From contig NIVC01000003.1 in NCBI GenBank assembly GCA_002269645.1, positions 1-64,000 on the forward strand: a DNA stretch of 64,000 nucleotides, written 5' to 3'. Of the stretch, positions 2,178 through 64,000 are shown one piece after another; the stretch's first letter is position 1; each line of letters starts with the position of its first letter. Below the pieces are notes generated by a model. That model ran no database searches, had not been told where the DNA came from, and saw only the letters and a program-made list of their open reading frames with translations. This DNA is from Macrostomum lignano (lineage: Eukaryota). The translations under genes were made by a program, and so were the position numbers.

Positions 2178-2183
2178 TTTATT
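2178..2183 (-). promoter_or_regulatory. AATAAA polyadenylation signal of the five-domain gene
   Basis: tttatt on the + strand, 13 nt past the TGA at 2196-2198. Confidence 0.55.
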
Positions 2184-2195
2184 TGCTCTCCAGCT

Positions 2196-39400: not shown

Positions 39401-41926
39401 AATAGCGCCAATAGGTTTAATAGTGCAACAAGCCCTCTGGTTCCTTCCTATCCCGCAGGTCTGTGGACGCCCTTCGCTACCTCCGGGACGAGCTGGACCC
39501 GGAGTGTGGCCAGCCCACCTGCCGGCTGGACCGGGATCTGCGGGACGACCTTCGCAGCGCCCTGCCGAAAATGGACGCGTTCTGCCGGGAGCAGCCCGAG
39601 GCCGCAGGTTCGAGTCCCGCTCTGAAAATCTTGGCCGAAATCCTTCGCGGTCAGTTTGGCCAGAACGGGGACTCGCGGGTGATCATCTTTGTGCAGCAGC
39701 GCTGCTTCACCCGCTCCATCAAGGACTTCTTGGACAGCAGCCAGCCCGAGCTGGCCAACGCCGGGGTCAGGGCCGCCGTCATGACCGGTGCGAACGCCTG
39801 TGGCGCCGTTGGCGGCATCACGCAGAATGCGCAGACCGACACGCTGGCCGACTTTAGGCGGGGCGTGGCTAAGGTGGGGATTTGAGGGATTGTGGGTGGG
39901 ATTCGGGTGGTTGTTGGGTTATTCTAAGCTCAGGGGTTAGCAGAGTGGGCAGAATCGCGTTGCGCCAGGTTGCCCAGAGCCCACCTGAATTATTATTATT
40001 ATTATTACTATTATTATTATTATTACTATTATTATTATGAAACCCCGCAGATTCTCATCAGCACGAGCGTCAGCGAGGAGGGCCTGGACGTGCAAAAGTG
40101 CAACATGGTTGTTCGCTTCTGCCACGTCACCAACGAAATCGCCATGGTGCAGTCGAAGGGCCGCGGCCGGGCCGAGGGCAGCACGTATCACGTGATTGTG
40201 CCCGAGCAGCTGGGCTGGCTGTCCGACAAGGAGAAGACAAACAGGATGCGGGACGAGATGATGCAGGAGGCTGTGCTGCGGCTGAGCAAGATGGAGCAGC
40301 TGGAGTTCCAGGCCAAGGTGCTGCTCTGGTCTCTGTGCTCGTTTGGCTTTGTAGATATGCTTGCGTGTTGTGAGGCTGCTAGCGTCTTTGATGATTTTTA
40401 TGGGTTTGAAATTTCTCCTTTCTGTCTTTGATAATGTTAATGAGTCTTTGAGGATGTCAATGTGTCTTTGAGATTGTTAATGAGTCTTTGAGGATGTCAA
40501 TGTGTCTTTGAGGATGTTACTGTGTCTTTGAGGTTGTTAATATGTCTTTGAAGATGTTAATCTGTCTTTGAGGATGTTAATGTGTCTTTGAGGTTGTTAA
40601 TCTGTCTTTGAAGATGTTAATCTGTCTTTGAGGATGTTAATGTGTCTTTGAGGATGTCAATCTGTCTTTGACGATGTCAATCTGTCTTTGAGGATGTCAA
40701 TGTGTCTTTGAGGTTGTTAATCTGTCTTTGAAGATGTTAATCTGTCTTTGAGGATGTTAATGTGTCTTTGAGGATGTTAATGTGTCTTTGAGGATGTTTA
40801 TCTGTCTTTGAGGATGTTAATGTGTCTTTGAGGATGTTAATCTGTCTTTGAGGATGTCAATGTGTCTTTGAGGTTGTTAATCTGTCTTTGAGGATGTTAA
40901 TGTGTCTTTGAGGATGTTAATGTGTCTTTGAGGATGTTAATCTGTCTTTGAGGATGTTAATGTGTCTTTGAGGATGTTAATGTGTCTTTGAGGATGTTTA
41001 TCTGTCTTTGAGGATGTTAATGTGTCTTTGAGGATGTTAATCTGTCTTTGAGGATGTCAATGTGTCTTTGAGGAGGTTAATCTGTCTTTGAGGATGTCAA
41101 TGTGTCTTTGAGGATGTTAATGTGTCTTTGAAGATGTTAATCTGTCTTTGAGGATGTTAATCTGTCTTTGATTATGTTAGTGTGTCTTAGTATGTTAATG
41201 TGTCTTTGAGCACGTTACTTGTCTTTAAGGATGTTCATGTCTTTAAGGATGTTACTGTGTCTATTTTGAATTTTGTCTTGTGAGAGGCTGGTGTGTCTTT
41301 AGGCGCCTCAATGTGTCCCAATGTGTGCTAGCGTGTATGCGCCTTTAGAAACGCTGATTTCAGCTCTTGCGTCTTGACTCCATCAGGTGCAGAAACTGCA
41401 GTCCGACCAGGCCTGCCTGCGCAAGATTCAGCAGATCCAGAAGTCTGCCGCTTCCGCGAGGGGTGCTGCTGCGCCTCGGGGTTCAACGCCGCGGCCCCAC
41501 TACAACCTGCAGTGCGTCGGCTGCAACACCCTCGCTTGCACTTCGCTGGACCTCCGCATGGCCGACAAGCATTTCGTGGTGCTGCGCGACTCCCTGCTGA
41601 CCGACGGCCGCGCTCGTCTGCAGCCAAGGCCGGGCGGCCCCGCCGAAGACCTGCTGAACTCGCAGATTGTCTGCGCCAAGTGCCAGAAGCTGTGGGGCGG
41701 CCTGCGCAAGTTCAAGGACCTGGTGTTCCCCTGGCTGAAGGTGGAGCCGTTCAAGTTCGTCAACTCCTCCACTGGGGTGTCTGCCTTCGGAGTGAAGAAG
41801 TGGGCGGACACGAGCAAGTACTTCGGCACGCCCGAGCTTAGCAACAAGGAAATGCTCGACAAGGCGGAGGGCCTGCCTGAGGAGCTGTACATGCAGCTGC
41901 TGGCCGGCTCAGCGCCCGAGGAGTAG
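30470..41926 (+). CDS. RIG-I-like receptor (DDX58/IFIH1-like), ~1037 aa: CARD/death-fold-like N-terminus, SF2 helicase, Zn-binding CTD. Exons: 30470-30608, 31271-31432, 32465-32686, 33453-33590, 34727-35157, 35591-35905, 36496-36980, 39459-39873, 40051-40317, 41387-41926
   Basis: Q-motif RAYQLEL, motif I APTGSGKT, DECHH, GLTASPG, VIIFV, STSVSEEGLDV, QSKGRGR, CTD CVGC...CAKC. Exons total 3114 nt, in frame, all GT-AG. The start codon is uncertain. Confidence 0.93.
30640..31220. repeat. ~39-bp minisatellite, RLR intron 1
   Basis: gcagcagctctctgaatcactgtggcattggggagggta. Confidence 0.95.
31555..32435. repeat. 32/33-bp minisatellite, RLR intron 2
   Basis: ggactggtgagatacggtaggacatacaaagac and variants. 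Confidence 0.95.
32750..33130. repeat. Degenerate pyrimidine-rich repeat, RLR intron 3
   Basis: cccaatcccatctct units. Confidence 0.8.
33700..34264. repeat. 30-bp minisatellite, RLR intron 4
   Basis: gggttagagtacatgctttaggtaatgttt. Confidence 0.95.
34265..34604. mobile_element. ~340-bp hAT (Charlie-like) MITE
   Basis: TIRs CAGGGGTCGGCAAACT / AGTTTGCCGACCTCTG (15/16 match); ctttaggt on both sides, the right copy displaced by 3 nt. Confidence 0.8.
36297..36439. mobile_element. Small fold-back/MITE-like element in RLR intron 6
   Basis: catcacaagcccgcaaaatcac...ccgaaa and tttcggaattgtgatttttgcgggcttgtgatg form a ~33-bp imperfect inverted repeat. Confidence 0.55.
37040..37270. repeat. G-rich (ggaggctgataggg)-type repeat, RLR intron 7
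   Basis: Visible. Confidence 0.8.
38060..39400. repeat. 1.3-kb G-rich 16-20-bp minisatellite (ggaaggctgataggctggtg)n with higher-order blocks
   Basis: Visible; same family as 37040-37270. Confidence 0.95.
39988..40038. repeat. (TAT)n microsatellite directly upstream of an RLR acceptor
   Basis: Visible. Confidence 0.9.
40430..41200. repeat. 20-bp minisatellite (tgtctttgaggatgttaatg)n, RLR intron 9
   Basis: Visible. Confidence 0.95.
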
Positions 41927-42654
41927 GCAGAGATGGGGAATCCCCCTGCCAGTTGCCAACTGTCGGATATGTTCGTTGTTACAGATTTACAATAGGCACC
42001 TGTGCCAGTACTATTGATTCATCTTATCGATTGATATTGAAGCTGATTCATTTTAGGAACTGATCTGCAATCTGTGCGGATCCTTACTGATTATTGCCTT
42101 ATGCTAAATATATATTTATTTTGATTTTTGCCCAATGAATGCTTTGGCCCCGAAACCTGGTGAGCTGTGATCATTTTATCAGCGTGTAACAATTCCGTTA
42201 TTGAGCTAAGGGCAGTAATAACTACTATAACAAATATACTCTGCCGTTTAATTAGAAAACTAACTCCATAGACTGTTTGACTGCATTTTTAAGTCCTTTG
42301 TGTCTGGCCTTCTGATAACATGATCAACCTGAAATTGTGCGAGCAAAGTCTCCGGCTGCTTTGATTTTGCCGTAAATAGTTAGGCCTTAAAGTGCATCTG
42401 CGAATCATCTTGAGCGTAAAAATCGTGTTTGAATCAATCGATCGGCTTCTCATTCGCTTTTGAGCCAGAAATTTGATAAGTCTAAGCAGGCTGGGAACCG
42501 ATCTCAGTTCGTGGTTGGTGAAGTTAGCTGAAAATATAAAAATCAATCAGTAAGCCGAATGAGTATACTGTGTCATAAAGCATATCACCGCCTTGCAGTT
42601 GCGTGCGCTGCAATTTTTTGGGGCACCGATTTTTGGCTTTTGGTGGGCGCCCCT

Positions 42655-44215: not shown

Positions 44216-45184
44216 CTACTTCCGCCGTCTGTGCGACAGCACGCCCGCTCCGACGCGGCGGCAGTGGGCGGTGAACTCCTCCGGGGTGATGAACATCGGC
44301 GGGCAGGCAGCCCGGGTGCAGGCGGCGCTGCGGTCCGGCAGGCAGAAGCAGCGGTTGCAGCCGTCGAAGAAGGCCAGTTCGGCGGTGCGCCGGCCCCTGC
44401 ACAGGCTGTCGGCGTCCAGGCAGGTCGTGTAGAAGCGCGACCGGTCCTTCTTCTCCTGGAAGCGGCGCTGCGCCTCCCGGCAGTAGAGAGCGGCGGCCTC
44501 GTTGTCGGGCTCCGGCTGCGGGCACTCGCGGCTGTCGGCCACGCGGGCCAGGCCGTCCGACACGCAGGTGACGTTCCGACAGCCGTCGTTGTACTGGAAG
44601 CCCGGCAGGAACTCCTCGCAGATGCGGCTGTGCCGCAGCGCCGGGCACTCGAACTCGTCCTCCTCGAGCGCGCCGGCTCGCGGCTCCTCCGACTGCTGCT
44701 TTTCCGAGCCCTCCGACTCCAACGCCAATGCCACGAAGCGGCAGTACGGGCCGGTCGGGTCGGTCACCGGGCATTCCATGCGGGTCCTGGCGTGGCCGCC
44801 GGCCGCCAGACAGCGGACCCGGTTGCAGCCGTCGCTGAAGGCGAAGCCGGCGCCGCGGCGGGTACAGACGGAGTCGGCATCGATGTTGTAGCAAGTGAAG
44901 GGGCCGAGGCGGCTCCAGACGGCGCGGGAGAGGCTCTCGCAGAGGTTCCGCTCGCCCCGGCTGCTGGGCTCCGGGCAGGCCAGGAGGGTGGTGCTCGCCA
45001 GACCGCCATCGTTGCAGGTGACGGTGTTGCAGCCATCGTTGTAGCTGAAGCCGGACTCCGTGGCGTTGCAGACGAGTCCGGGATCGAGGTCCGGACAGCG
45101 CAGGGCCGGCTCATCCTTCTCGGCCTGACTACTCGAAACGGCAGTGCACAGCAGGCCCACCGTGATGAGGAAGAGAAGCTGCAT
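44216..45184 (-). CDS. Secreted pacifastin-like multi-repeat protease inhibitor A (322 aa, 4 repeats, intronless)
   Basis: Signal MQLLFLITVGLLCTAVSSSQA; last repeat canonical FFDGCNRCFCLPDRSAACTRAAC; three DGCNxVxC variants. Confidence 0.85.
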   Translation of the reverse strand: MQLLFLITVGLLCTAVSSSQAEKDEPALRCPDLDPGLVCNATESGFSYNDGCNTVTCNDGGLASTTLLACPEPSSRGERNLCESLSRAVWSRLGPFTCYNIDADSVCTRRGAGFAFSDGCNRVRCLAAGGHARTRMECPVTDPTGPYCRFVALALESEGSEKQQSEEPRAGALEEDEFECPALRHSRICEEFLPGFQYNDGCRNVTCVSDGLARVADSRECPQPEPDNEAAALYCREAQRRFQEKKDRSRFYTTCLDADSLCRGRRTAELAFFDGCNRCFCLPDRSAACTRAACPPMFITPEEFTAHCRRVGAGVLSHRRRK

Positions 45185-46314
45185 AGTTTTCGTTTATCCC
45201 AGTAGTCTCTTAGAAAAGCTGAATTGATATTTTGCTGTGGGAAAAGCATCAGCTTTTCAAGTCTTTTATGCCAACGAAGCGGACAGTTCGAAGAGTAAAA
45301 TGGCAGTTTGAACTTCCGTTTTCTGACATTTAGCATTTCAAAGCTGATTGCTGATAATTGCCGACATAATTGGCAGTGCGAACCGGTTGCTGGGCGAACC
45401 TTTCTACCCTTTCAAGCCCCGCCAGCTCAGGCTGATCTGGCACTGACGGGGAGGGGCTCCTGACTCATCAATTCTCCAGTTTTGGTGGTCAGCTGCCGCT
45501 GCATTGGCCAGATCCGCAAACTGACCGATGGCAGCTCACAATTGCCCAGCCCAGTGAGAAAGCGCCAACTCGGGCAACAGGCCCAGTTTCGTGTTGACTG
45601 TGCGAAATGTTTTATTCTATTTCATTCAGCGCAAATAAAGCGGTTGATGCCGAGGTCAAAACGATTGCGGCCAGGCCCTGGCTTAGCGACAAACGCGGTT
45701 GGTCCCTTTGTCAGCCCCGCCCCCGGTCTGCCCAGCTCTGCAATCAAGCGCTGGGCCAGAGCCCGGACCGCAAGGAAATACTGAGCTACAAGTCCTGGCC
45801 TAAAAACGCGATGGGATGACGTGTCGCATGTACACAGGGATAGCGGCATTGGGAATAATCAACAAATTGGAAAATAAGATTACGTATTGATCAAGTCTAC
45901 ACCAGCATTATCGAGGTTCTATCGGTAATGAAATCGGGGTTAATGAGAGGGAAAGAGATGCATCAACAGAGATCGGAGGCCGCATGCAGAATGTATAAAG
46001 CGAGTACTAGCAAAGTAAGTAACGCGGAGTTTTTAAAAAATGACGCCCCTCGCAGCGCTTGCACGAGAAAAGTTTACAAGTTTTACTTCTACAGCCCATC
46101 ACAAGGTCAGCGAGACGCTTCCAGCTACCGGCCAACCCCCCATTGTCATTTGCCAAGCCGCGAGCGCAACTGAAACCTTTCCCAGTCACCCGTGCAAATT
46201 CTAAAAACAACAGCAAATTTTTGTGGAAACGCCTCGAGTCTCGTATAACATTGATGTGCGGCTTCGCTGATGGTTGGTCAAGGCACAGGTACGTGAACGA
46301 AATCGGCAGGGTCT

Positions 46315-47442
46315 CTAGTTGATGATGCCGGCCTTGCGCCGCACGCACTCTGCCCTGAACTCCTCCTCAGTGCTGAAGTAGGGCTGACAAGCCCGCCGGG
46401 TGCAGCCTGCCCGATTGACGCCCATGCAGAAGCAATAGTTGCAGCCGTCGAAGAACGATTTCCGCTCCCCGGGCTGCTTGCAGACGTCCGCAGCCGTCAG
46501 GCAGCTCGTGCGCCGCTTTGACTCTCGGCGCTTCGCCTCCATGGCCGTCTTGGCGTCGCTGCACCTGCGAGCGGCCTCCGCCTCGCTGCCCACCCGACAG
46601 AGGCGGGTGGTGCTGACACCACGGCCCGGCGAGGAGCAGTACACTTCGTTGCATCCGTCGTTGTAGCGAAAGCCGTTCATCTCATTCGTGCAGATTCGCG
46701 ACATGGCCAGCTCCGGACAGTCGAGGTCCCGGTTGCCCTCAGGAGCAGTTCGGCGGGCTTTGCTGACCACCCACTGGCAGAGGGCGCTCTCGGAACTGGC
46801 TGGCGGGCAGCCCATGAGCGTGCTGGTCCACATGCCGCTCTCTCCGCACTCGATCGTGTTGCAGCCGTCGCTGAATCGGTACCCGATGCCCTCCATCCGG
46901 CAGACCTCCGTCTTGTTGATCCCCGAGCAGGTCCGCGGCTCCATCCGTTCGACCAGGCGCTCCATGCGCCGCTCGCACCTGGCGATCTGGGTAGGGTCTC
47001 CCGGCGACGGGCAGAACATCAACGTGGACGTGCCGCTGCCGTTGCCGTCGCAGACCACCGGGTTGCAGCCGTCGCTGTAAGTGAAGCCGGCACCGGCGGT
47101 GGCGCAGACGGCCTGCATGGACAGCGCCGGGCAGGTTACCCTGTCCGCATCGTCCAGTCGCAGCTGTATGTTCTCACGGATCGTCTGGCAGCGCTGTCGC
47201 TCCTCGGCTGTGGCGGCCGGCGGGCAGGCCATCAGCGTGGAGACCAGCGAGCCGCTACCGTCGCAGGTCACCGTGTTGCAGCCGTCATTGAAGCTGAAAT
47301 CGGCTGGCGCGAGCTTGCAGATCGACTGCTGCCAGCTGTAGCCGCAGCCGATGCCGTCGGACGAGTCTTCCTGGGATTTGGCGATCAGCGGAGCCGCTGT
47401 GGCCAAGAATAGCGCAATGAGCAGTCGGCAGGGATGCTGCAT
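46315..47442 (-). CDS. Secreted pacifastin-like multi-repeat protease inhibitor B (375 aa, 5 repeats, intronless), tandem paralogue of A
   Basis: Signal MQHPCRLLIALFLATAAPLIA; last repeat FFDGCNYCFCMGVNRAGCTRRAC; four DGCNxVxC...STxxxC variants. Confidence 0.85.
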   Translation of the reverse strand: MQHPCRLLIALFLATAAPLIAKSQEDSSDGIGCGYSWQQSICKLAPADFSFNDGCNTVTCDGSGSLVSTLMACPPAATAEERQRCQTIRENIQLRLDDADRVTCPALSMQAVCATAGAGFTYSDGCNPVVCDGNGSGTSTLMFCPSPGDPTQIARCERRMERLVERMEPRTCSGINKTEVCRMEGIGYRFSDGCNTIECGESGMWTSTLMGCPPASSESALCQWVVSKARRTAPEGNRDLDCPELAMSRICTNEMNGFRYNDGCNEVYCSSPGRGVSTTRLCRVGSEAEAARRCSDAKTAMEAKRRESKRRTSCLTAADVCKQPGERKSFFDGCNYCFCMGVNRAGCTRRACQPYFSTEEEFRAECVRRKAGIIN

Positions 47443-50149: not shown

Positions 50150-50560
50150 CCCCTTGAAGTTGTGTGACGGATGGAAGGACTGTCGGTGCAAGAAAGACAG
50201 TTGTGGCGTGAAACGATTGTGAGCTTTCTTGATGGTCATGTCAAGGAAGCTGACCTCAATCAATGAGATGCTGACGGAGAGATTAATGTTATAGGGTTGA
50301 TGGAAGTCAGGTGACGAACAAATTCTGTCAGAGTATCAGCCGGGTGGTCCCAGTGAATAAAGCTATCATCTATGTACCTGAAGTAGATGTCCGGCTTATA
50401 AAGGGAAGTTCTCAGGGCAGTTTCCTCCCAGAGACCCATAAAGAGACAGGCATAGCTGGGTGCAAATATGCTCAAGTATGCAATTCTCCCCAGAGAGAAG
50501 ATAAAGAGAACTGCTTCCTTGATATGAATTTTCTGCTATATAAATCGAGACAGACCCCCC
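50150..50560 (-). mobile_element. Degraded Penelope-like retroelement RT fragment
   Basis: APSYACLFMG..., YFRYIDDSFIHW, FVRHLTSINP, followed by an ISFLDM-like segment in another frame. Confidence 0.75.
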
Positions 50561-50834
50561 TGATCCCCTGATCATCTCCGCAGTCTCGGGTTGCAGTGGC
50601 TGGTCCAGCTGTTGGTGGGCATCAGTATCAAGCAGTCAGTTGGTTGTAAGCCGAAAATTTATGAGTGCATGATGATTACTGCGTTTCCTTTGTCCTGAGG
50701 CGCTCTGGTCTACAGTGATCTGCTAGCCTGAAAGTTCTCAGTCAGGATGTCAGCGCAGGAATAAACTCAAGCGCTGAGAAGGATACAATTGGTTTAAGAG
50801 GGTTTTATCGTTGTTTTAGAGGGTCGAATTCATT

Positions 50835-51445
50835 GCGCGCCGCCGGTCCCGCAGTGAAGCAAGCCCCAGTACAGTTGGTTTGCCGCCGGTCCCGCAGTGA
50901 AGCAAGCCCCAGTACAGTTGGTTTGCCGCCGGTCCCGCAGTGAAGCAAGCCCCAGTACAGTTGCTTTGCCGCCGGTCCCGCAGTGAAGCAAGCCCCAGTA
51001 CAGTTGCTTTGCCGCCGGTCCCGCAGTGAAGCAAGCCCCAGTACAGTTGGTTTGCCGCCGGTCCCGCAGTGAAGCAAGCCCCAGTACAGTTGCTTTGCCG
51101 CCGGTCCCGCAGTGAAGCAAGCCCCAGTACAGTTGCTTTGCCGCCGGTCCCGCAGTGAAGCAAGCCCCAGTACAGTTGGTTTGCCGCCGGTCCCGCAGTG
51201 AAGCAAGCCCCAGTACAGTTGGTTTGCCGCCGGTCCCGCAGTGAAGCAAGCCCCAGTACTGTTGGTTTGCCGCCGGTTCCGCAGTGAAGCAAGCCCCAGT
51301 ACAGTTGGTTTGCCGCCGGTCCCGCAGTGAAGCAAGCCCCAGTACTGTTGGTTTGCCGCCGGTTCCGCAGTGAAGCAAGCCCCAGTACTGTTGCTTTGCC
51401 GCCGGTCCCGCAGTGAAGCAAGCCCCAGTACTGTTGATTTGCCGA
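50835..51445. repeat. 43-bp minisatellite (gccgccggtcccgcagtgaagcaagccccagtacagttggttt)n
   Basis: Visible. Confidence 0.95.
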
Positions 51446-51989
51446 GAGTTTGAGGCCACTGACAAGCTTTGGACAGAGGACCAGGTTTCAGAGCCACTGC
51501 TGAAAATGAGCGGAGCGGGTTGCTCAACCGGATGCTGGGTGAGCCATCCAGAAGCGGCCTGTTGCGTTCAGGACCACCAGAGGCGTCCTCCGAGTCCGGG
51601 GAGAGCAGGCGGCGTTTAGTGAAGTGAAGCCGCCAGCCGCCAGAAGAAACAGATTGACGGCTGAAATAACACTGCCGCACGGTTTTTAGCGAAAAGATTC
51701 AGTGCAAACAGTGCGAATAAAGTGTAAATATGAGCCAAGAAGCAGTTTAGTTGAGTCACCCGGGCTGGCTGCAATGCTCCCGGCTCATGCTTGCAATGAG
51801 TCCGACTACATAAGGCTTCCCAGGAAGCTGGCGGGCTGCAAGCGTGTCTTCAAGCCTCCCCCGGAGTTGCTAGCAGGTGGGGGCTGAAGCGTCTTGGAGC
51901 AGCTTAGCCCAGGCTGGGGAGTTCAAAAACTTCCGTCTCTGCCTCCTCTTTGGCTCATTTGCGTTTCCTTGGCTCTGTATGCGGATGAA

Positions 51990-52711
<722 letters not shown>

Positions 52712-53021
52712 GGCAAAGGCTAATAAATATTGTAATTTTTCTCAGGCTTAACCGGGTAAGACTGGCAGCAGTCGCTGAATCCTGTTGGACAGCTGCCGCT
52801 AGAATGGATCCAGTTGCGAGGCTCATTAAAAATATTTATTAAAAACACTTCTACTTTCAAAGTAAAATAGCAAACAGGTTACGTTCGCGGTTCTGAGTCA
52901 GCAAATAAATACGAGCGTAGAACTGCCACCAGTCTGCAGTCTTGAGTACAGGAAAATATAATGAATTGCAAAAGTTACAGAAATAGCATTAGAGAGGCGG
53001 CCTTGGCGGTGCCGACGCGCC

Positions 53022-56000
53022 TCAGAGCTCGCAGACGAGGCTGCCCTCGGCATCGTCCTCCACCGAGTCCTCAATAAATGCTCGATTCGTCGCGCCCTCC
53101 TCGATGACCACGGCGATCGCCGTATCGTCGCAGAATGACAGCACCTTCTTCTTGACGTTGGCGGACCCGTTGGTGCCGGCGCTGCGGCTGAGGATCGACT
53201 TCCGCGCCGCGGTGCCGTTGCTGCGCTGCGCCGGTCCCAGCGCCGACATCTCCAGAGACTCGCTGGACATAAAGATGCGAAACGGCGCCGCCTCGGAGCC
53301 GCTGCCGGTCAGCCGCGCTTTCTGCAGGCTGCGCGGCAGCAGCTTCTGCGCCTCCGTGGCGGCCGGCCGCGTTGATGGCAGCGGCGGCGTCGGCGGCCGG
53401 ACCTCGTCGACGACTGTGACAGTGACGCGATCTGGCGAGGCCGCCGCCGCCGCCGCCGCCGATTCGTCGGAGTCTCTGGCAGCGGCGTGCAGGCGATAGC
53501 GGCGGCTGCCCAGGGCGGGGGCGGGCGGCGGCGAGCGGGCCGTGCCGCGGAGGCGCTGCGCCCCCCAGGACGGGTTCGCCTCCTCGTCGGAGCCCGCGTC
53601 CGCATCCGCGTCGGCATCCGCTTCGACGTCAGACGGGATCAGCGCGTCCCCAGCCTCCAGGAGCATGGAATCCTCAGCCTCATCGCTGACGCTCGAGATG
53701 CAGTAGGTGGTGACGAATTTGCCGTCCTGTGGGTGGGGAGGGGGGCAGCTCGGTGAGCCTGCGGTGTCCCCACTGTGACGTCACGCCATTTGCCACCTGT
53801 TTTATAATTCTTGTTGTCTGTCTTCTCATCTAATCTTTTCTTAATTGATGACGATTGCGAATCCGACTTGTTCTCGCGAATTTCACGTTTCTGGAATTCT
53901 CCTCGCTAAGCCCAGCTCCTCCACCACGCCATTGTTCGGATAAAAGTCCTCTCCCCCCCCCTCTCTCTCTCTCTCCCTCTCTCCCTGCGCACTGCCATGC
54001 GCATTTTTTTCATAATGGAGTGGGCGCCCCACTAGGGACTGAATTTTATGGTCCGGAGTCTGGCCAGCCATGCCAACCCCAGCCTGTGCTGCATCTGTCG
54101 GAGCCAAAATTACCCCAAATTAATTTGCAGGTCTAATTAAATATCTCTGAGACTCGCTGACGTGAAATTCGATTACAGCCGGCCGCCCCACCCGCCATTC
54201 TGCTCCGGCAATCGATCAGGAGCTGCGGCCGGGGCCTGCCGGACTCAAATATTGACACCGCAGCGCCCGCCACCAACTCAAGTGAGGGCTGGGGACGGGC
54301 TGCGTGCAGTGAAACAAAAGGCGAGCCCGCCTGGGAGCATTGAGGGATTCTGAAACCGATAGATGCTTATTTGAAGGATAAGGTAGCCCTCTAATCATAG
54401 TCTTACTGGAAGCATTGCCCAGAAATTTTCGACAATATTAAAGCTGACCATCTTTCCCTAAATAGGATTTTACCCAAGTAAAGTAGGGAAATTACCAGCC
54501 TACTCACAGGTGCAACTCTGAGCTGGCCTCACCTGCCCAACTGTCAATTGTGCATTCTGCAAGCCTAATTAATCACTGGGTAGAACAATTCTGCTCTTTG
54601 GAAGTTGAGCATTTTGCTCTGAAGACAGTTCCGTCATTATCCTGATTGATGGGGGGGAGCTGGCTTTGAAGTGGACTCGGTAGAGCTATTAATAAAAACT
54701 CAGGCGGATGCCTGCTGCTTCAAGCCACATTAGAAACATAGCAGGTGCCAGCACTGGCCACTGAACACTGCCACCAATGCCTCAGCGACCTCGAATTTTT
54801 TGCACTCACCGAAGCCGGGCAGAGTCGCTTCTCAAAGTGTAACTTTTGCTGCTCCTTTTTCTTTTTCTTTTTCTTCCTGCCGCTGCTTTTTTCGCCGGCT
54901 GCCTCCAAGCCCGGCGGTGGCGAGGTGCCCGAAGCTGCCGCCGCCGCTGTTGCCGCCGCCGTTGCTGCCGCATTTGCAGCCGCCGCAGCGGTTGCCGCCG
55001 CTGCCGCCGCCACCTTCGCCGCTGCGGTGGCGGACTTTGGCTCCGGCTGTGGAATCGGGGGCGGAGTTTCTGCCTGATCCGCCGCGGCACTCTCGGCGGC
55101 CTCCCCGTCGGCTCCGTTGCCCATTTCCTGCGCCGCCCCCTCAGCTGCCTCCATCGCCGCCTCCAACTTCGCGGCCTCGTCGGTTGGCTGCTCTGGCTCT
55201 GATGGCGCTACAGTCTCCGGCTCTTCGTTCGCATCAGTTTCGCCCGCGAGTGCCCGTCGCACCGTCTCGGACGCGTGCACCTGGTGCTTCTCGGCGCTCA
55301 GCGCCAGCTGCAGGGCCACATGGAGCGCGCCGCCGCCAGCGAAGAGCGCCGGGACGCCGGAAGTGATGACGCCGATGGACACTGGGCCGCAGTGCAGCCC
55401 TGCGCAGGCGGCCATCGGCGGTGACGCTACACCGCCGCCATTGCCGCAGTCGGCGTCGTCATTGACATGGACTCCGCCGCATCGCACTAGGCGGATTAGG
55501 TGCTCAGCCAGGCGCAGCAGGTCGCGGACGCTGCGTCGAGAGGACTTTCGCCGCAGGCCGCATAGGAACAGGAAGAGGTCGCCGAACGCGTGGCGCATGT
55601 GGACGTCCTTGTAGCTGGCGGCGATGCTGTTGAATACGTGGTAGTGGGCGTTGGAGACGGCGTTCACCTCAAAGGGCCGGTTGACGTCGCTGAGGCAGAC
55701 CAGGCCATCCAGGCGCACGAAGAGCACCCCAGCCAGCCGCTTGTACTCTGGCTGGAACGGCTGGTCGTTGAGCAATCGGCTGGCGTAGAACTCGGGCAGG
55801 TTGGAGCGGATCATGGCCTGGTAGGAGTCTCGCTGCTCCTCCATGGCCGAGTTTAATGCCAGCATCTCATTCTCCAGCAGCAGGTGCTCGGACTCCAGGC
55901 TGTCAAACATGCTCTGCATCATGTTCTTGCGCCTGGGGAAGCACTTCTTGACCAGCTTGGTGAGGTTCTCGGCGCTGGGCCGGACCCTGGGATCGTCGCT

Positions 56001-59000
56001 CCAGGAGGTTTCCAGCACCTGGCGGAAGGTGATGGGGATGTCCTGAAGCTGGTCAGGCCGCAGCGAGTTCTTCACAATGGCCGTGAGCAGGTCCCGGGCG
56101 TTGCTCAGGTCCTCCCTGTAGCTGGCGAAGGGAATGCTCCGGGTGAAGATCTCGTAGAAGATCACAGCGCAGGAGTAAATGTCGGAGCTCTGGTCCGGCG
56201 GCCACTGCAGCTCGGAGCGGAGGATCTCGGGTGCAACGTAGATGTCGAAGTCCAGGACCTGCTGCTCGCTGGATACTCGCCCAGTATGGCGTCGCGGACG
56301 TACTGGATGGCCGGCCGGGCGTCTTTGACGGCCCGGGTGGTGGTTGAATAGTACATGAGGTACTCCCAGTCCGCTAGCTTCACCGTCCACTTGCTGTCCA
56401 TGAGGCAGGCGCTGGTCCGCAGCATGCCGTGCACGATGCCCTGGCTGTGCAGGTAGCTGACAGCCTGGCAGATGTCCATCACTATGGAGCCTTTGACCGC
56501 GGGCGCCAGGTCCAGCTTGGGGTTGTGCACAACCTTGCTGAGCGGGCCGCGCTCGCAGTACTCTGACACAACAAAGAAGTCCCGCTCGACCTGGGTCAGG
56601 CCGTGGAACGCTGCCACGTTGTTGTGGTGGACGCGGTCCATCATCCACTGCAGCAGCTTCTTAGTGGAGATGTCGAGCCTCTCTTGCGATCGCTGCGTCT
56701 GCAGCAGTCGCACGCCGACGCTGGCCTCCCGGAACTTGCCCGGCCACTGCAGCACCGTGTCCGCGTCGTAATCCTCCTCGCTCTCCGCTTCATCCTCCGT
56801 CATCTGCGTGCCGACGGAGATCGTGTCGGAATCGTCCATGCGGAAGCTGCGCATTGATCGGTTGCGGCCGCGGCTGCGCGGAGCGAAGAACATGATCTCC
56901 TCGATCGGCACCAGCCACAGGTCCTGCGCGGGCCAAGTTTTGAGGAGGGGGAGAGTTGCTGTCTGGCACCTGCGCGACTTTTTGATGCAGAAGTAAGTAT
57001 CAACTGCCTTTGTGGCGTGCCCCACGGCTCATATGTTATACAAACTACTTTCACTCTGCGTAAAGAGCCCAGCCCAAATCTCCTTGGTCTCTCCTGCTCC
57101 CTTGCTGTTGAGCTGTGAGTTGCTTTGCTGCCTGAAGGCTTGTCTAAAGACTGACGGATGAACTCTCAGTGCCAGTCAAGAAAACCTGGATGGAGACGCG
57201 GCACACGAGCAGGCACGAAAAATTCAAGGATCCGGAGGCTTTCTCTACAACCTGAGGAATAAGAATGTAAAAATACAGTGTGTTGCTGAAGCTTCAGAAT
57301 TGGCTCACCTGGTTGAGCAGCTTCCACTGCACGTAGCTCTGCCTGGCAATGTACGCCCCGAGGCCGCCGGCCACCAGCAGCCCGACGCCAACGGAGGCGA
57401 GCGTCGGCGCCATCCAGGACGAGTTCCGGCTCTCCGCTTCCGTCTGCTCGCGGCGCCGCTTCTCCAGCCAGAGCTCGCGCAGGAGCCGCCCACCGCAAGC
57501 GGCCTTGTCGAGCACCTGCGTCCGGACCTTCTGGCGGACAGCGTTGCTGAGCGGCACGAAATTGTTGGCGCGGATAATGCTGGCCGGCTCCGGGTCCGTG
57601 TAGAACCAGTTCAGGAAGCCATAGAACTCGGTGGCTTCATCGCACCTGGAGTTCGGGCGGAGTCTGGCTAGTGCTGAGTGCCCTATCTATTTAGTACCTT
57701 TCGGCCGTCTGAATTTTTGTTTTATAGCCCTCTAACATTAACCAGTCCTCTCTTGTCCACTCTACAGTCCCCTCTTGTCTACTCTACAGTCCTCTCTTGT
57801 CTACTCTACAGTCCACTCTATAGTTCTCTCTTGTCCACTCTACAGTCCTCTCTTGTCCACTCTACAGTCCACTCTACAGTCCTCTCTTGTCCACTCTACA
57901 GTCCACTCTACAGTCCTCTCTTGTCCACTCTACAGTCCACTCTACAGTCCTCTCTTGTCCACTCTACAGTCCACTCTACAGTCCTCTCTTGTCCACTCTA
58001 CAGTCCTCTCTTGTCCACTCTACAGTCCTTTCTTGTCCTCCCGACAGTCCTCTATTGTCCACTCTACAGTCCTTTCTTGTCCTCTCGACAGTCCTCTATT
58101 GTCCACTCTACAGTCCTTTCTTGTCCTCTCGACAGTCCTCTATTGTCCACTCTACAGTCCTCTCTTGTCCTCTCGACAGTCCTCTCTTGTCCACTCTACA
58201 GTCCTCTCTTGTCCAGTCTACAGTCCTCTCTTGTCCTCTCTACAGTCCTCTCTTGTCCTCAAGACAGTCCTCTCTTGTCCACTCTACAGTCCTCTCTTGT
58301 CCTCTCGACAGTCCTCTCTTGTCCTCTCGACAGTCCTCTCTTGTCCACTCTACAGTCCTCTCTTGTCCACTCGACAGTCCTCTCTTGTCCACTCTACAGT
58401 CCTTTCTTGTCCACTCTACAGTCCTCTCTTTGCCCCATCTACACGCATGTCGCTCTTGTGTCCTTTCTATATGCGAAACATGAAAAGCCTTGGCCTGCAA
58501 TCAATTTAAATAATTTGTGCATCTTTTATTGCTTTTAGCCTGGAAGCACAGCAATTATGAAAATTAAGCGTCGGGCTGTCCAATAAAACCAATCCACGAC
58601 ATTAGAATGAAAGAATCAGCAGAGACTGCTTTTCCATTGTTATCAGACCTCACTCGCACAAAGGGCTGCTGAGTGAGGTCTGTTTGGTTAGTCAGTTTTA
58701 AGGTTCAGTTTTAAGAGGTTATCGCCCCGTGCAAATGCTGCAGCCGTCGACAGCTACATAACCCCACAGTGGATATGCAACGATTGAGAGGGACTGGCCT
58801 TCATAAGCACACAGCATCATGTCCAATAAAGAGGCTTCAGTTCACATACGATCCCCATTGCGTCTGCTTATCCTCTGGGGCTGAATGAGACTTCTCAATG
58901 ATTCTACTCTCATTGCCGGTCCAGTAGTCCTTGTTCTACTCTCATTGCCGGTCCAGTAGTCCTTGTTCTACTCTCATTGCCGGTCCAGTAGTCCTTGTTC

Positions 59001-60167
59001 TACTCTCATTGCCGGTCCAGTAGTCCTTGTTCTACTCTCATTGCCGGTCCAGTAGTCCTTGTTCTACTCTCATTGCTGGTCCAGTAGTCCTTGTTCTACT
59101 CTCATTGCCGGTCCAGTAGTCCTTGTTCTACTCTCATTGCCGGTCCAGTAGTCCTTGTTCTACTCATTGACTGTACAATAGTCCTTATTCTACTCATTGC
59201 CTGTACAATCGTCCTTGTTCTACTCGTTACATGTACAATCGTCCTTATTCTACTCGTTACATGTACAATCGTCCTTATTCTACTCGTTACATGTACAATC
59301 GTCCTTATTCTACTCGTTACATGTACAATCGTCCTTATTCTACTCGTTACATGTACAATAGTCCTTGCTGTTATCTAGGAAACAGACTTCCTGCTAGTAT
59401 TTTCTAGGAAAAACCCCTGTAGCTGTGTGAACCCAGATCCTCTTTAAGCTTTGCTGCCTTTAGCTCTAATCGACAAACAAACTTAGGCTGCAGGAAACAA
59501 TCGTGTTTATATAAAACAAGAGAAACCGTCCCATAAGACTCACCTCGCAGTCATGTTCATCTTGATGATGAAGTAGGTGTAGGTGGCGATTGGGTAGGCG
59601 TCCGGGTTCTGGGCGTCAATGAGGTGTCCAGTTAGCCGGGAGTCCATTGTGTTAGCGTAGAAGTCCATGGCCGCCTGCACGGAGGCCGGTTGCGAGGCGT
59701 CCACGAAGCTTCCGTTGGCGTTCTCAATCAGCGCGAGGCTCACGAGGCTCTCATCGTTCAGTCTGAGATCCGAGGCCGATATGTAGGCGATGGAGTTTCG
59801 CAGGCTGCTGAGTAGGGCGGTGAGCCCATCGGTACCCTGGGCGAAGAACTCAACAACTGAATTGTTCCAGTCCGGGTGTCTCCAGGTGACTTTGTTGAGC
59901 TCGCGCTCGAACTCGCCGTACTTGGCCTTCCACTCGGCTGAGAAGGAGCTCAGAGCTTGGGTGAAGACTGCGGTGGAGCCCGACTTGTCCATGCGAGCCA
60001 TGGGCCGGATGGGGTTGTGGGGCAGACTCGAGTTCGGGTTCGCGTTAACAATGCCCGGGCTGTCCCAGTGCGAAGTTTTCCCCATGTAGATGTCGACCAG
60101 AGTCTGGCGGGTCAGGCGCAGCCGTGTTGCACCGAAGGACGGCGGGTGATAGGCCACCGCCACGGCG
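53022..60167 (-). CDS. Receptor guanylyl-cyclase-like protein with PstS-type phosphate-binding ectodomain, TM helix, kinase-homology domain, degenerate cyclase domain and long tail. 5' end not found. Exons: 60167-59544, 57663-57309, 56923-54810 (1-nt deletion near 56271), 53726-53022
   Basis: PstS-like LTRQTLVDIYMGKTSHWD..NPNSSLP..ARMDKSGST..AYPIATYTY..FLNWFY; TM APTLASVGVGLLVAGGLGAYIA; KHD HNNVAAFHG/EYCERGPL/HGMLRTSACLMDSKW/YVAPEIL/SDIYS; cyclase-like AFGD, GLHCGPV, HFEKR..|DGKFVTTY. All junctions are GT-AG and phase-compatible. Confidence 0.88.
57775..58430. repeat. ~22-bp minisatellite (cagtcctctcttgtccactcta)n
   Basis: Visible; intronic. Confidence 0.93.
58905..59370. repeat. 32-bp tandem repeat grading into a 30-bp variant
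   Basis: ttctactctcattgccggtccagtagtccttg changing to tactcgttacatgtacaatcgtccttattc. Confidence 0.9.
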
Positions 60168-60254
60168 CTGTGGGAGTTCGTTGGCTTTCATTTAGCTTCT
60201 CAGCACCTCGAGGCCTCTCAACTGGCTATGTTCGGGTAAGCCTCACAAGGCTAC

Positions 60255-60705
60255 TCAAGCCCCCTGACACACTCCAGGGCTACTCAAGCCCCCTGACACA
60301 CTCCAGGGCTACTCAAGCCCCCTGACACACTCTAGGGCTACTCAAGCCCCCCTGACACGCTCCAGGGCTACTCAAGCCCCCCTGACACGCTCCAGGGCTA
60401 CTCAAGCCCCCTGACACACTCCAGGGCTACTCAAGCGTCCCTGACACACTCCAGGGCTACTCAAGCGTCCCTGACACGCTCCAGGGCTACTCAAGCCCCC
60501 CTGACACGCTCCAGGGCTACTCAAGCCCCCTGACACACTCCAGGGCTACTCAAGCGTCCCTGACACACTCCAGGGCTACTCAAGCGTCCCTGACACACTC
60601 CAGGGCTACTCAAGCGTCCCTGACACACTCCAGGGCTACTCAAGCGTCCCTGACACACTCCAGGGCTACTCAAGCGCCTCTGACACACTCCAGGGCTACT
60701 CAAGC
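60255..60705. repeat. ~28-30-bp minisatellite (ctgacacactccagggctactcaagcccc)n
   Basis: Visible. Confidence 0.93.
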
Positions 60706-60709
60706 CTGA

Positions 60710-60915
60710 ATCACACCATATCTGTGTCACACCATATCTGTATCACACCATGCCTGTATCACACCATGCCTGCATCACACCATGCCTGCATCACACCATA
60801 TCTGTATCACACCATGTCTGTATCACACCATGCCTGCATCACGCCATGCCTGCATCACGCCATGCCTGTATCACGCCATGTCTGTATCACGCCATGCCTG
60901 CATCACGCCATGTCT
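60710..60915. repeat. 16-bp minisatellite (tcacaccatgcctgta)n
   Basis: Visible; abuts the previous array. Confidence 0.9.
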
Positions 60916-61459
60916 GTCTCCAGAGCGGCTTGTGAATGCAAAAGCAGACCTAGCGGTCGGTCCTTGCAACCAGTCCCGTGCATTGCAGTAGTCACGGGAG
61001 TTTCTCGAGAGTCTGTAGGCACGGATAAGCTGAGATCTCAGCAAACTGTAAACTTGTGCATAATTCAGCAAAAGTACACAATGAAAGCACACACTCGCAA
61101 AAGGCATATCTGAGCAATTCATGCATCTGTAAATATTAGCATGGATCTTCTACACTAAGGCAGGCTATCGCTCTGACTGGTCTCGTACTTTAAATAGCGG
61201 CGATCGCTGGTCTCTACACTTGTCCTGCCGATGCTGGATGGCAATTTTTTTTGTGAGGCTACTGTGAGGCGAGGGCAGGCCGGTTACTGCTGGCGGAATT
61301 AAACCCTTCACGGCCCATTAATTAATGAGTTGTTGCAGAGACTGGCGCGGCAGAGGGTGGCCATCAGGCCAGAGCTCAGGCATACGGCCCAGCCTAATAG
61401 CGGCTCAGGGTTTCAGCTCAATTGGCTATTTGAACAGAGCTTACGGTGCCAAAGCTGGG

Positions 61460-61862
61460 GGCGGAGCGGAGGGCGGGAGGCGCCGTCATGAGCCAGCAGC
61501 CCCATGGCGGCGGAGCGGAGGGCGGGAGGCGCCGTCATGAGCCAGCAGCCCCATGGCGGCGGAGCGGAGGGCGGGAGGCGCCGTCATGAGCCAGCAGCCC
61601 ATGGCGGCGGAGCGGAGGGCGGGAGGCGCCGTCATGAGCCAGCAGCCCCATGGCGGCGGAGCGGAGGGCGGGAGGCGCCGTCATGAGCCAGCAGCCCCAT
61701 GGCGGCGGAGCGGAGGGCGGGAGGCGCCGTCATGAGCCAGCAGCCCCATGGCGGCGGAGCGGAGGACGGGAGGCGCCGTCATGAGCCAGCAGCCCCATGG
61801 CGGCGGAGCGGAGGGCGGGAGGCGCCGTCATGAGCCAGCAGCCCCATGGCGGCGGAGCGGAG
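61460..61862. repeat. 49-bp GC-rich minisatellite
   Basis: ggcggcggagcggagggcgggaggcgccgtcatgagccagcagccccat, about eight copies. Confidence 0.95.
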
Positions 61863-62269
61863 GGCAAAACAATGAAGTGGAAAAAAAAGACTCAGCAAGG
61901 TGGGCTGGAAAAAAACAAACTTTTTGTAGCAGCGGATCAGCGGCTAAGTTTCAATTAACAGAGTCCTCAGAGCTGCCGCTGACGTGGGGAACTGCTGCAT
62001 GGGCGGATCTCGACATGCACAAGTTTCCTGTTTCGCTAAGAGTTAAAAAGTCAGCTCTGCTTTCTGTCAAAGTCTGATTCGCGATTCTGCCATGCTTATT
62101 TCGGAAATCATTGTGAGCCAGTCGGGTGACAAATCTTTCCTAGTCTTAACTCTGACTTAGAGTGAGCGATGCGAGCTGTTTGATGAGCTGAGGGCTTTCA
62201 TCTTTGTTGGAGTTCTCGAGCCCAACTGGCTTGCTTTGCCTGGCTATTCAATTACTGAACTGCCTGTAT

Positions 62270-62830
62270 GCCTACCTGCCTACCCACCTGCCTACCCACC
62301 TGCCTACCCACCTGCCTACCCACCTGCCTACCCACCTGCCTACCCACCTGCCTACCCACCTGCCTACCTAACTACCTACCCACCTACCTACCTAACTACC
62401 TACCCACCTACCTACCTAACTACCTACCCACCTACCTACCTAACTACCTACCCACCTACCTACCTAACTACCTACCCACCTACCTACCTAACTACCTACC
62501 CACCTACCTACCTAACTACCTACCCACCTACCTACCCACCTACCTACCTAACTACCTACCCACCTACCTAACTACCTACCCACCTACCAACCTACCTACC
62601 CACCTACCCACCCATCTACCTACCCACCTATTTACGTGCCTACCTACCTACCTACCTACCTACCTACCTACCTACCTACCTACCTACCTACCTATCTACC
62701 TACCGATCAACCTACCAAGTACCTACCCACCAATCTACCCACCTAACTGCCTACCCACCAATTCACGCACCTACCCACCTATCTACCTATCCACTTACCC
62801 ACGTACCTACCTAACTACCTACCCACCCAC
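62270..62830. repeat. (CCTA)n-derived degenerate microsatellite
   Basis: Visible. Confidence 0.92.
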
Positions 62831-63489
62831 ATCTGACCTAAAAGTCACCAGTTCCTGTTTTATTTATCAATCATATTCTCCACCCTTCATCGTTTTTCTG
62901 TCGTTATATAGATATTAATTTCCAGCCTCAGGACCACCAGAGACGAGTCCTTTTTCTGGATCAAATCCAATTTTCTGAAATACAACTACAAACGGAACTA
63001 AAAAGAGACAGGCGCCACCTCAAGCTAGCAGAGCCGAGAGCCCAGCCGCGGAAAAGTATGCTCAAGAAAAAACAACATGGCTTGTGGCCTGTTTTCAGGC
63101 TGAGATGGAGCAGCCCGCCTCTCCCTTCTCATTCTTCAATGTTGCTTTTACGAGCTAAAAAGCAGCCTAAAATCCCGCGCTGCTACTTCCAGATCCCGGC
63201 ATGAAAGCAGCACTTTTGCCTGCTTTGGGTCTTAGACCTGCCACTTTTGTTTTTGCAGCCACAGCACAAAAGTCAAAGTGGATTGCTTGCTCTGACGGGC
63301 TGCACCGGCACAATGAGTTTGTTTTGTATACTTTTTATACAATCCGACCAAACACTGACTCGCGAGCCTGCAGCAGGATAGAACTGACAGAAAGGAAATC
63401 TTCAACAATATCTGCAGATAAAAACTTGTCACAGATTCCAATGAATCTATGCGATAGATGGGTTAGATCTGTAGACTAACAACAACAAA

Positions 63490-63990
63490 ATGCTCAGACT
63501 AGCAATCCATTCTACTCCACTGCATTTAGGCTAGACTAGCAATCCATTCTACTCCAGTGCATTTAGGCTAGACTAGCAATCCATTCTACTCCAGTGCATT
63601 TAGGCTAGACTAGCAATCCATTCTACTCCAGTGCATGTAGGCTAGACTAGCAATCCATTCTACTCCAGTGCATTTAGGCTAGACTAGCAATCCATTCTAC
63701 TCCAGTGCATGTAGGCTAGACTAGCAATCCATTCTACTCCAGTGCATGTAGGCTAGACTAGCAATCCATTCTACTACAGTGCATGTAGGCTAGACTAGCA
63801 ATCCATTCTACTCCAGTGCATGTAGGCTAGACTAGCAATCCATTCTACTCCAGTGCATGTAGGCTAGACTAGCAATCCATTCTACTCCAGTGCATTTAGG
63901 CTAGACTAGCAATCCATTCTACTCCAGTGCATGTAGGCTAGACTAGCAATCCATTCTACTCCAGTGCTTGTAGGCTAAACTAGCAATCCC
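63490..63990. repeat. 37-bp minisatellite (gctagactagcaatccattctactccagtgcatgtag)n
   Basis: Visible. Confidence 0.95.
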
Positions 63991-64000
63991 TCGCAGAGTC

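Follow-up and report, generated by a model that had tools for sequence, protein, structure and literature searches.

A PstS-type phosphate-binding ectodomain on a probable receptor of guanylyl cyclase type in Macrostomum lignano

Introduction

Receptor guanylyl cyclases of animals, such as natriuretic peptide receptor A, the retinal guanylyl cyclases and the GCYs of Caenorhabditis elegans, combine an ectodomain of the ANF_receptor type with a membrane helix, a pseudokinase bearing an HG.L..S.C motif, a linker helix and a class III cyclase domain. The ANF-type ectodomain is itself a periplasmic-binding-protein fold, assigned to class I. In the present study, we describe a gene of the free-living marine flatworm Macrostomum lignano in which the same order of intracellular elements is preceded by an ectodomain of the PstS type (class II, PF12849), and in which the cyclase domain has lost six of seven key residues. 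The gene lies on the minus strand of a 64,000-nucleotide stretch of genomic DNA, hereafter the window (assembly GCA_002269645.1, contig NIVC01000003.1, positions 1 to 64,000). We consider it probable (roughly 0.7) that it is a member of an old, widespread and uncharacterised family of eukaryotic receptors with a PstS clamshell ectodomain, a single membrane pass and an intracellular part of the receptor guanylyl cyclase type.

With regard to the ectodomain, the closest described system is PstS, the phosphate binder of PstSCAB (Escherichia coli, structures 1ixh and 2abh; Mycobacterium tuberculosis PstS-1, 1pc3 and 7dm1), with which the M. lignano domain shares the Pfam family, the two-lobe fold and, in the part encoded by the window, the phosphate-ligand positions, with Ser for one Thr. 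Free periplasmic PstS docks on the PstCAB ATP-binding cassette transporter, whereas the M. lignano domain forms one polypeptide with a membrane helix and a signalling module; unlike E. coli PstS, it also has a conserved Cys pair and N-glycosylation sequons and is encoded by a spliced animal gene. DING proteins and the human phosphate-binding protein (2v3q, 2q9t) are likewise phosphate binders of the same superfamily reported from eukaryotic samples, but they are soluble and not fused to receptors, and they represent a weaker structural match than PstS. Class C (glutamate-type) G protein-coupled receptors (GPCRs) of non-animal eukaryotes, with PBP_like_2 as their N-terminal domain, offer a further parallel, recorded for the protein SPPG_06488 of the chytrid Spizellomyces as a domain combination alone (PMC3251606). 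Such receptors share the PstS-like sensor, and the domain found in a protein of Hondaea is 29% identical to that of M. lignano and has the Cys pair in common with it, but their output is a seven-helix GPCR, unlike the pseudokinase and cyclase-like module of the M. lignano protein.

The sequence-only reading of this DNA that preceded our analysis had contrasted the gene with the receptor guanylyl cyclases carrying ANF-type ectodomains. The contrast holds as far as the class of the binding protein is concerned, but since the ANF-type ectodomain already has a periplasmic-binding-protein fold, this is not the first prokaryote-type binder on such receptors, and the novelty lies in the swap of one binding-protein class for another. 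Full-text literature searches turned up nothing on animal receptor cyclases with a PstS-type ectodomain, the entry on the chytrid GPCR being the only related record. UniProt and RefSeq already list the sequences publicly under automatic names; what is new is the PstS (class II) ectodomain on the receptor-cyclase chassis.

Results and Discussion

An ectodomain of the PstS type

The window encodes the C-terminal two thirds of a PstS-type domain, divided between two exons designated E1 and E2. The minus-strand frame-2 translation of 60187-59543 holds LTRQTLVDIYMGKTSHWDSPGIVNANPNSSLPHNPIRPMARMDKSGST and AYPIATYTYFIIKMNMTAR, and the minus-strand open reading frame (ORF) 57686-57297 reads CDEATEFYGFLNWFY, followed by a charged stretch and a hydrophobic helix. 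An alignment of these exons with E. coli PstS, made by eye in the sequence-only reading, proved sound: the peptide quoted there is present in the reading frames of the window, and the E. coli strings occur verbatim in the database sequence of E. coli PstS (P0005). In the Pfam scan of the ectodomain, PBP_like_2 (PF12849) was the only match. It scored 52.7 bits, where the cut-off is 27, at E 6.9e-14, and it spanned positions 91-266 of the 267-position profile; ANF_receptor gave no match. When sequences of solved structures were searched, all 19 matches were phosphate-binding proteins, led by M. tuberculosis PstS-1 (E 1.7e-20) and including E. coli PstS (E 2.7e-17), with no DING protein among them.

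The remaining third of the domain is known from UniProt A0A1I8HE86 ("Guanylate cyclase", 1867 residues), the predicted M. lignano protein of the locus. An AlphaFold2 model of the ectodomain, in which the N-terminal third was taken from this protein, being encoded outside the window, was built on an alignment of 19 family sequences and reached a predicted local distance difference test score (pLDDT) of 82.3 and a predicted TM-score (pTM) of 0.83, with low confidence only at the signal-peptide end and at residues ~52-80. The predicted fold is the two-lobe fold of class II periplasmic-binding proteins. In a Foldseek search of the PDB, the best 46 matches were all phosphate binders, with PstS at E ~1e-25 and a TM-score of 0.75-0.80, DING proteins at ~1e-15 and a TM-score of ~0.6, and molybdate binders only at ~1e-6. 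The ectodomain is 24-26% identical to characterised PstS proteins, and the root-mean-square deviation (rmsd) between the model and the crystal structures is ~4.8 A.

Concerning the binding pocket, the window encodes R135, D137, S139 and G140 (E. coli numbering), with Ser in place of T141; the phosphate-loop motif RMDKSGST is encoded at 59995-59972 in E1. T10, F11 and D56 are kept in the predicted N lobe, which is available from A0A1I8HE86 only, and S38 falls in its aberrant, low-confidence stretch (residues ~52-80). The Cys pair (TAR-C-DEA and AA-C-GG) is absent from E. coli PstS, and four N-glycosylation sequons precede the membrane helix on its N-terminal side. The survey of ORFs in the window revealed no pstCAB-like frames. 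A Pfam scan of the full 1867-residue A0A1I8HE86 listed neither PBP_like_2 nor Guanylate_cyc; because isolated segments do match both profiles, their absence probably reflects how the HMMER bias filter treats so long a sequence of low complexity.

Membrane helix, pseudokinase and a degenerate cyclase domain

A membrane helix is predicted towards the end of E2 (Table 1), the best 19-residue Kyte-Doolittle window of this region being LASVGVGLLVAGGLGAYIA, with a mean of 1.86 by hydropathy only. The next exon, E3, aligns collinearly along its length with a receptor guanylyl cyclase of the annelid Owenia fusiformis (E 6e-51). Its first domain is matched by PK_Tyr_Ser-Thr in two halves (E 6.9e-18 and 2.2e-6), and at 1.2e-24 on a frame-corrected model. 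It bears the pseudokinase signature usual for receptor cyclases, with 'VHGMLRTSAC' in place of the HRD motif and 'LADWEY' in place of DFG. The cyclase-homology domain that follows is only weakly matched by Guanylate_cyc (E 3.6e-6, 27.1 bits against a cut-off of 21.9). The sequence-only reading had predicted this very order of membrane helix, kinase-homology domain and cyclase-like domain behind PstS, and hydropathy, Pfam and the Owenia alignment all agree with it; likewise, the expected PBP_like_2, kinase-like and Guanylate_cyc profiles were all matched, and PstS came out closer than DING proteins or molybdate binders.

The state of the cyclase domain was assessed at seven positions, namely the two Asp that bind metal, the Glu and Cys that specify guanine, Arg for the triphosphate, and Asn and Arg for the transition state, which were compared between M. 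lignano, Owenia and 28 other family members. Where the canonical residues are D, E, D, R, C, N and R, M. lignano has R, H, D, A, F, H and Q, so that one of seven is kept (the second metal-binding Asp). As six of the seven catalytic or specificity residues are lost, the M. lignano copy is probably a pseudo-cyclase that would not produce cyclic guanosine monophosphate (cGMP) on its own, no activity being predicted for a homodimer. This is where the sequence-only reading fails for the present gene, as it had coupled the ectodomain to a cGMP-receptor chassis. Among the other family members, all seven residues are kept in 7 representatives, Owenia and Priapulus (XP_014672517) included, and an eighth, partial one has the four positions that it covers. 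About 20 other representatives have degenerate cyclases, among them both Haliotis paralogues, the bivalves and Tubulanus; XP_071091629 is a Haliotis protein of this kind.

In a neighbour-joining tree, M. lignano was placed in a cluster with Haliotis-2, Argopecten, Tubulanus and Ostrea, all with degenerate cyclases (bootstrap 74). The canonical members were separated from two clades with degenerate cyclases, and their group was without bootstrap support. The intracellular region of M. lignano gave its best scores against the same degenerate-cyclase relatives, with which it shares 35-38% identity in the kinase-homology domain, as also in the ectodomain, but only ~25% in the cyclase-like domain. 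Since the degeneration is common to the mollusc and nemertean relatives which group with M. lignano, the loss of catalytic residues appears to be ancient and maintained across a clade, and is not in itself evidence of decay in the M. lignano genome.

Gene structure and integrity of the locus

The coordinates of all features are given in Table 1. The first base of E1, behind the acceptor cacag/C, completes a Gly codon whose beginning lies in an exon beyond the window, and E1 ends at the donor AG/GTGAGT. For E2, two in-frame acceptors are present, at 57663 and 57645, the former of which would add LRPNSR. Both UniProt models of the gene read MNMTARCDEATEF (MNMTAR-CDEATEF) across the E1/E2 junction, and with 57645 as the start the spacing relative to Owenia and E. 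coli PstS is free of gaps; for these two reasons 57645 seems the more likely start. The in-phase splicing of 60167-59544 to 57663-57309, as proposed from sequence alone, is thus confirmed as to phase, with the start of the second exon likely moved by 18 bases. E2 ends at the donor CAG/GTGAGC (57309). E3 has the acceptor cgcag/GAC and, at 54809, the donor TCG/GTGAGT; if this donor is unused, the frame continues to a stop at 54723. The GT-AG junctions of E1, E2 and E3 are canonical and in phase. A putative last exon, E4 (53726-53022), is based on the predicted gene model only; it holds no recognisable domain and gave no match in the Pfam scan.

Table 1. Features of the M. lignano receptor gene in the window, and two related sequences with canonical cyclases.
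Feature	Location	Strand	Content	Basis
Upstream intron	60168..64000	(-)	Several tandem-repeat arrays, without coding exon	Sequence
Exon E1	59544..60167	(-)	Central part of the PstS-type domain, 'AVAVAYHPP' to 'MNMTA(R)'	Translation and splice sites
Exon E2	57309..57645	(-)	Last PstS helices, Cys pair, charged juxtamembrane stretch, membrane helix, RQSYVQWKLLNQ	In-phase acceptors
Predicted membrane helix	57345..57410	(-)	APTLASVGVGLLVAGGLGAYIA	Hydropathy
Exon E3	54810..56923	(-)	Juxtamembrane, kinase-homology, linker helix, cyclase-homology, low-complexity Ala/Glu/Lys tail	Sequence, Owenia alignment
Kinase-homology (pseudokinase) domain	55941..56740	(-)		Pfam, Owenia alignment
One-base frame break	56270..56271	(-)	Inside kinase-homology exon E3	Sequence and frames
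Degenerate class III cyclase-homology domain	55239..55745	(-)		Pfam, residue-by-residue comparison
Putative last exon E4	53022..53726	(-)	Acidic low-complexity tail, stop TGA 53024-53022, acceptor ccacag/GAC	Gene model A0A1I8HE86
Canonical-cyclase relative	GCA_022702835.1, JAKGBL010007673.1, 842-3394		Single ~2.6-kb ORF on genomic contig	
Canonical-cyclase relative	ENA ERZ26052378 ctg8831, 1001-3697		Single ~2.6-kb ORF on genomic contig	

The exons are linked in two UniProt models which are independent of each other and stem from this locus or its allele, as suits a real gene better than chance ORFs. Residues 382-1628 of A0A1I8HE86 map to E1-E4 with 93-100% identity, and residues 382-589 are 100% identical to E1. 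Residues 1-381 find no counterpart in the window; they comprise a GRAM-like segment, which was probably merged in from an upstream gene, and the PstS N lobe (...RGSGATFPQNVY...FAGSDSIM...LAG). From base 60187 to base 64000 there are tandem repeats only, and the start of the PstS domain, ~90 positions of the profile, is missing from the window; the N-terminal PstS lobe, the signal peptide and the 5' exons are therefore placed beyond base 64000. At its other end, A0A1I8HE86 skips the stop of E4, and its residues 1629-1867, which fall in tandem repeats at 51671-50811, look spurious. The second model, A0A1I8GI17 (353 residues, "PBP_domain domain-containing protein"), covers E1, E2 and E3 and is an allele or a recent duplicate, as only 2 of 353 residues differ.

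Tandem-repeat arrays pack the introns and flanks of the gene (60200-64000, 58240-59380 and 50800-52840) and are also found at 16000-19600 and 30700-31250. Their units include ~49-bp, ~60-bp and GGTA-rich repeats, and a ~900-bp (CTGT)n-like array occupies 51.9-52.8 kb. Several of the arrays translate as long spurious ORFs, one of which has been absorbed into A0A1I8HE86.

Several observations weigh against the gene being a working member of a receptor family. Within E3, the reading frame is broken by one base: 'AILGEYP' in one frame ends at 56270 and 'SEQQVLDFD' in another begins at the same base. The GenBank record has the gene unannotated, with no gene called between 47443 and 57442 in spite of a transcriptome-guided annotation, and the joining of the exons in M. 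lignano relies on the sequence and on predicted gene models. The tree is a rough neighbour-joining one in which M. lignano sits on the longest branch, and no catalytically intact paralogue was identified in M. lignano. As for the ligand, residue conservation is the sole ground on which it is proposed, and, with the N lobe seen only in a predicted protein and the Ser38 region irregular in the model, the binding site may be incomplete. The route by which a dead cyclase domain would signal is likewise a proposal only.

Together with the loss of six key cyclase residues, the low-complexity tail and the introns full of tandem repeats, the frame break, the missing annotation and the long branch would also suit a pseudogene, in which a copy of a PstS-type receptor cyclase is decaying and has lost expression and function. 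We regard such an explanation as unlikely. A0A1I8HE86 reads GEYPSEQQV through the site without interruption, from which it follows that the window lacks one nucleotide at 56270/56271, most likely as an indel in an assembly built from PacBio reads with Canu and polished with Pilon (Mlig_3_7, NIVC00000000). Conversely, A0A1I8HE86 is out of frame over a short stretch of the cyclase domain, where the reading of the window aligns properly with other cyclases. Each of the two sequences thus carries an indel of its own, a pattern that fits PacBio-based assemblies, and the gene was taken as intact. Furthermore, the single-base break aside, there are no in-frame stops over ~3.8 kb of coding sequence, the second copy or allele is nearly identical, the ligand residues and both Cys are kept, and the degenerate cyclases of the mollusc and nemertean relatives point to an old and maintained state. 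A 35-nt mini-intron (GTACGT...CCAG, 56303-56269) was also considered as the cause of the frame change and was rejected, as A0A1I8HE86 keeps all flanking residues and adds one base.

Related receptors in animals

To place the gene, which we continue to read as a receptor, among its relatives, an exhaustive profile search with three eukaryotic ectodomains was carried out on 1.84 billion cluster representatives, and domain searches were run on the best 150 (50% identity clusters). The profile search gave 9909 proteins at E <= 0.001, and most of the best 150 were long and multidomain. A kinase-homology domain was present in ~38 of these 150, in most cases along with a cyclase domain, and a class C GPCR seven-helix domain in ~30. 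The receptor-cyclase members include Owenia fusiformis among annelids, Haliotis (abalone, three species) and the bivalves Mercenaria, Argopecten, Mya, Sinanodonta and Ostrea among molluscs, the nemertean Tubulanus polymorphus and the priapulid Priapulus caudatus. The suspicion raised earlier, that similar fusions may lie unstudied in other invertebrate proteomes, is hereby substantiated. The automatic NCBI names of these proteins ("atrial natriuretic peptide receptor-like", "retinal guanylyl cyclase 2-like", "guanylate cyclase 32E-like", "gcy-1-like") follow their intracellular halves, and the mollusc, nemertean and priapulid proteins bearing the first two names are thus misnamed as to the ligand-binding domain.

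Many family ORFs from genomic contigs start exactly where E1 starts ('..AYNLPG'). The position of an intron at this point would thus be conserved, with a single large exon behind it in many species. The idea that such proteins truly lack the N lobe was rejected: their start is an artefact of calling ORFs on eukaryotic genomic contigs behind that intron, and the N lobe is present where RefSeq has full-length models for these clusters. In Haliotis, a contig of 2795 nt from publicly available run data has the ectodomain, the kinase-homology domain and the cyclase domain in one 870-codon ORF and could represent a spliced transcript. The two ectodomains closest to that of M. lignano (41-46% identity) sit on receptors with fully canonical cyclases (Table 1, last two rows).

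The conservation of the pocket was inspected in 39 receptor-cyclase-type sequences. R135, G140 and both extra Cys are present in all 39, S139 in 38, and D137 in 35, with Glu in three more; position 141 is Thr in 30 and Ser in nine. T10 is mostly Ser across the family, and D56 occurs in every sequence for which an N lobe could be inspected, the M. lignano model included. The substitutions at positions 141, shared by M. lignano with the nine sequences just mentioned, and 10 could be taken to mean that the receptor is functional with a ligand other than orthophosphate (sulfate, arsenate, phosphite, phosphonate or a phospho-metabolite), or that the ectodomain is a ligand-free structural or dimerisation module; the aberrant Ser38 region, the rmsd of the model and the low identity to characterised PstS would fit the same explanation. 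On the other hand, there is hardly any variation at the R135/D137 pair or in the S-G-T/S loop, the fold matches to binders of molybdate and other anions are much weaker, and D56 is retained, a residue which reportedly discriminates phosphate from sulfate in the Quiocho-laboratory structures of E. coli PstS, several of which are among the sequence and fold matches of the ectodomain. This explanation therefore appears a little less likely still than a pseudogene. A receptor for phosphate or another oxyanion that does not make cGMP on its own is, judging by its residues, a plausible description of the M. lignano gene.

The same ectodomain in protists and its origin

Outside animals, a related fusion of a PstS-type ectodomain with kinase-homology and cyclase domains is found in the protist Fabomonas, and several other outputs occur. 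In the green alga Tetraselmis astigmatica (P0138) a PstS-like ectodomain is combined with a PDEase_I cyclic-nucleotide phosphodiesterase, which would be the mirror image of the cyclase fusion. In the ichthyosporean Chromosphaera perkinsii (P0125) the PstS domain occurs four times in tandem, accompanied by ephrin-receptor-like repeats and a TRP-like channel region, other proteins have PARP and WWE domains or MHYT repeats (P0139, P0146), and the Hondaea protein referred to in the Introduction, named 'GABA-B R2' (P0002), is a class C GPCR with a PstS-like ectodomain. Ectodomains with the extra Cys pair were found in an ichthyosporean, a labyrinthulomycete and an ancyromonad and, within the top-scoring matches, in a green alga and a euglenid. 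As the same ectodomain is joined to many outputs across protists and animals, the use of the PstS sensor by eukaryotes seems to be old and modular, and neither a recent nor an animal-specific capture. Of the earlier proposal of a prokaryote-derived ectodomain, the PstS type of the domain is supported; a recent capture by animals is contradicted by the protist relatives which share the Cys pair.

In regard to the bacterial side, a word-index search with a profile of 19 receptor-type ectodomains returned few family members and mostly ~400-residue bacterial PstS from metagenomes, and it did not reliably single out any bacterial group as sister. Among free-standing proteins, the closest relatives that came up were ~400-residue PstS from Chloroflexota-type metagenome bins. 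These relatives, and the overwhelmingly bacterial distribution of PstS, are what could speak for a recent horizontal transfer or a bacterial contamination, in which case the PstS-like exons would lie outside any animal receptor gene. However, spliceosomal GT-AG introns split the exons, one of them within the PstS domain and a second at the upstream edge of the domain, the exons are on a 492-kb animal contig near genes for a RIG-I-like helicase and pacifastin-like proteins, the same fusion is present in at least five animal phyla, and the extra Cys pair is also found in protist fusions. Given the introns in and bounding the domain and the distribution of the family, contamination or recent transfer is considered excluded for practical purposes, its probability being negligible.

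Proposed mechanism and significance

According to the mechanism that we propose for the M. lignano receptor and its relatives, phosphate or a close oxyanion would bind in the cleft and bring the two PstS lobes together. The movement could then be passed through the last helices, braced by the disulfide, to the membrane helix and further to a dimer of the pseudokinase and cyclase-like module, in the manner of the natriuretic-peptide receptors. In members with an intact cyclase, for example those of Owenia and Priapulus, the output would be cGMP. For the M. lignano copy a non-catalytic output is envisaged, in which it would pair with a competent cyclase subunit and regulate it; alternatively, it could serve as a scaffold through the pseudokinase and the long acidic tail.

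A more speculative proposal, to which we lend distinctly less confidence than to the family assignment, extends this to the PstS-type receptor cyclases of marine invertebrates (molluscs, annelids, nemerteans, priapulids and flatworms) as receptors of extracellular phosphate or oxyanions. Intact members might turn ambient or body-fluid phosphate into cGMP, and members of the degenerate clade might act as non-catalytic partners, decoys or scaffolds tuning the signal. If true, this would amount to an animal phosphate-sensing pathway without a vertebrate counterpart, its sensor being the one which protists couple to class C GPCRs and to phosphodiesterases.

To our knowledge, the sensing of extracellular inorganic phosphate in animals is still poorly understood. 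An ectodomain with a PstS pocket on a classical cGMP module represents a testable candidate for such a sensor, with cGMP as a read-out for the cyclase-competent members. The family also indicates that receptor cyclases can swap one class of binding-protein ectodomain for another, and the persistence of a dead-cyclase clade across phyla bears on the use of pseudoenzymes in receptor signalling. M. lignano can be made transgenic (PMC5730564), which makes tests in the animal feasible.

Neighbouring features of the window

At lower window coordinates, a multi-exon RIG-I-like helicase gene extends over ~34600-42000 (+), with DEAD/ResIII, Helicase_C and RIG-I C-terminal regulatory domains and a GenBank product of 1046 residues. 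It is followed by two single-exon genes of the pacifastin type, 44219-45193 (-) and 46315-47442 (-), which encode secreted, cysteine-rich proteins with repeated protease-inhibitor motifs; the Pacifastin_I match is at E 2.3e-13 for the first and weak for the second.

A tandem array of at least four paralogous ORFs of ~200 residues occupies 2199-6482 (-), with the common pattern '...GD.GFW.{2}SD[RK]KDVC.W..KGW.GS[AG]P.LVYT...'; the one ORF scanned gave no significant Pfam match. The adjacent 244-residue ORF at 6525-7256, which begins like a signal peptide, had no Pfam match either. An exon at 12149-12619 (+) encodes an F5/8 type C or NedA-like galactose-binding domain (E 6.3e-9). Finally, reverse-transcriptase-like fragments at 27789-28208 (+) and 50263-50535 (-) carry 'YADD' and 'YIDD' motifs, with a weak RVT_1 match for the first; they are probably decayed retroelements, and the second lies directly downstream of the receptor gene.

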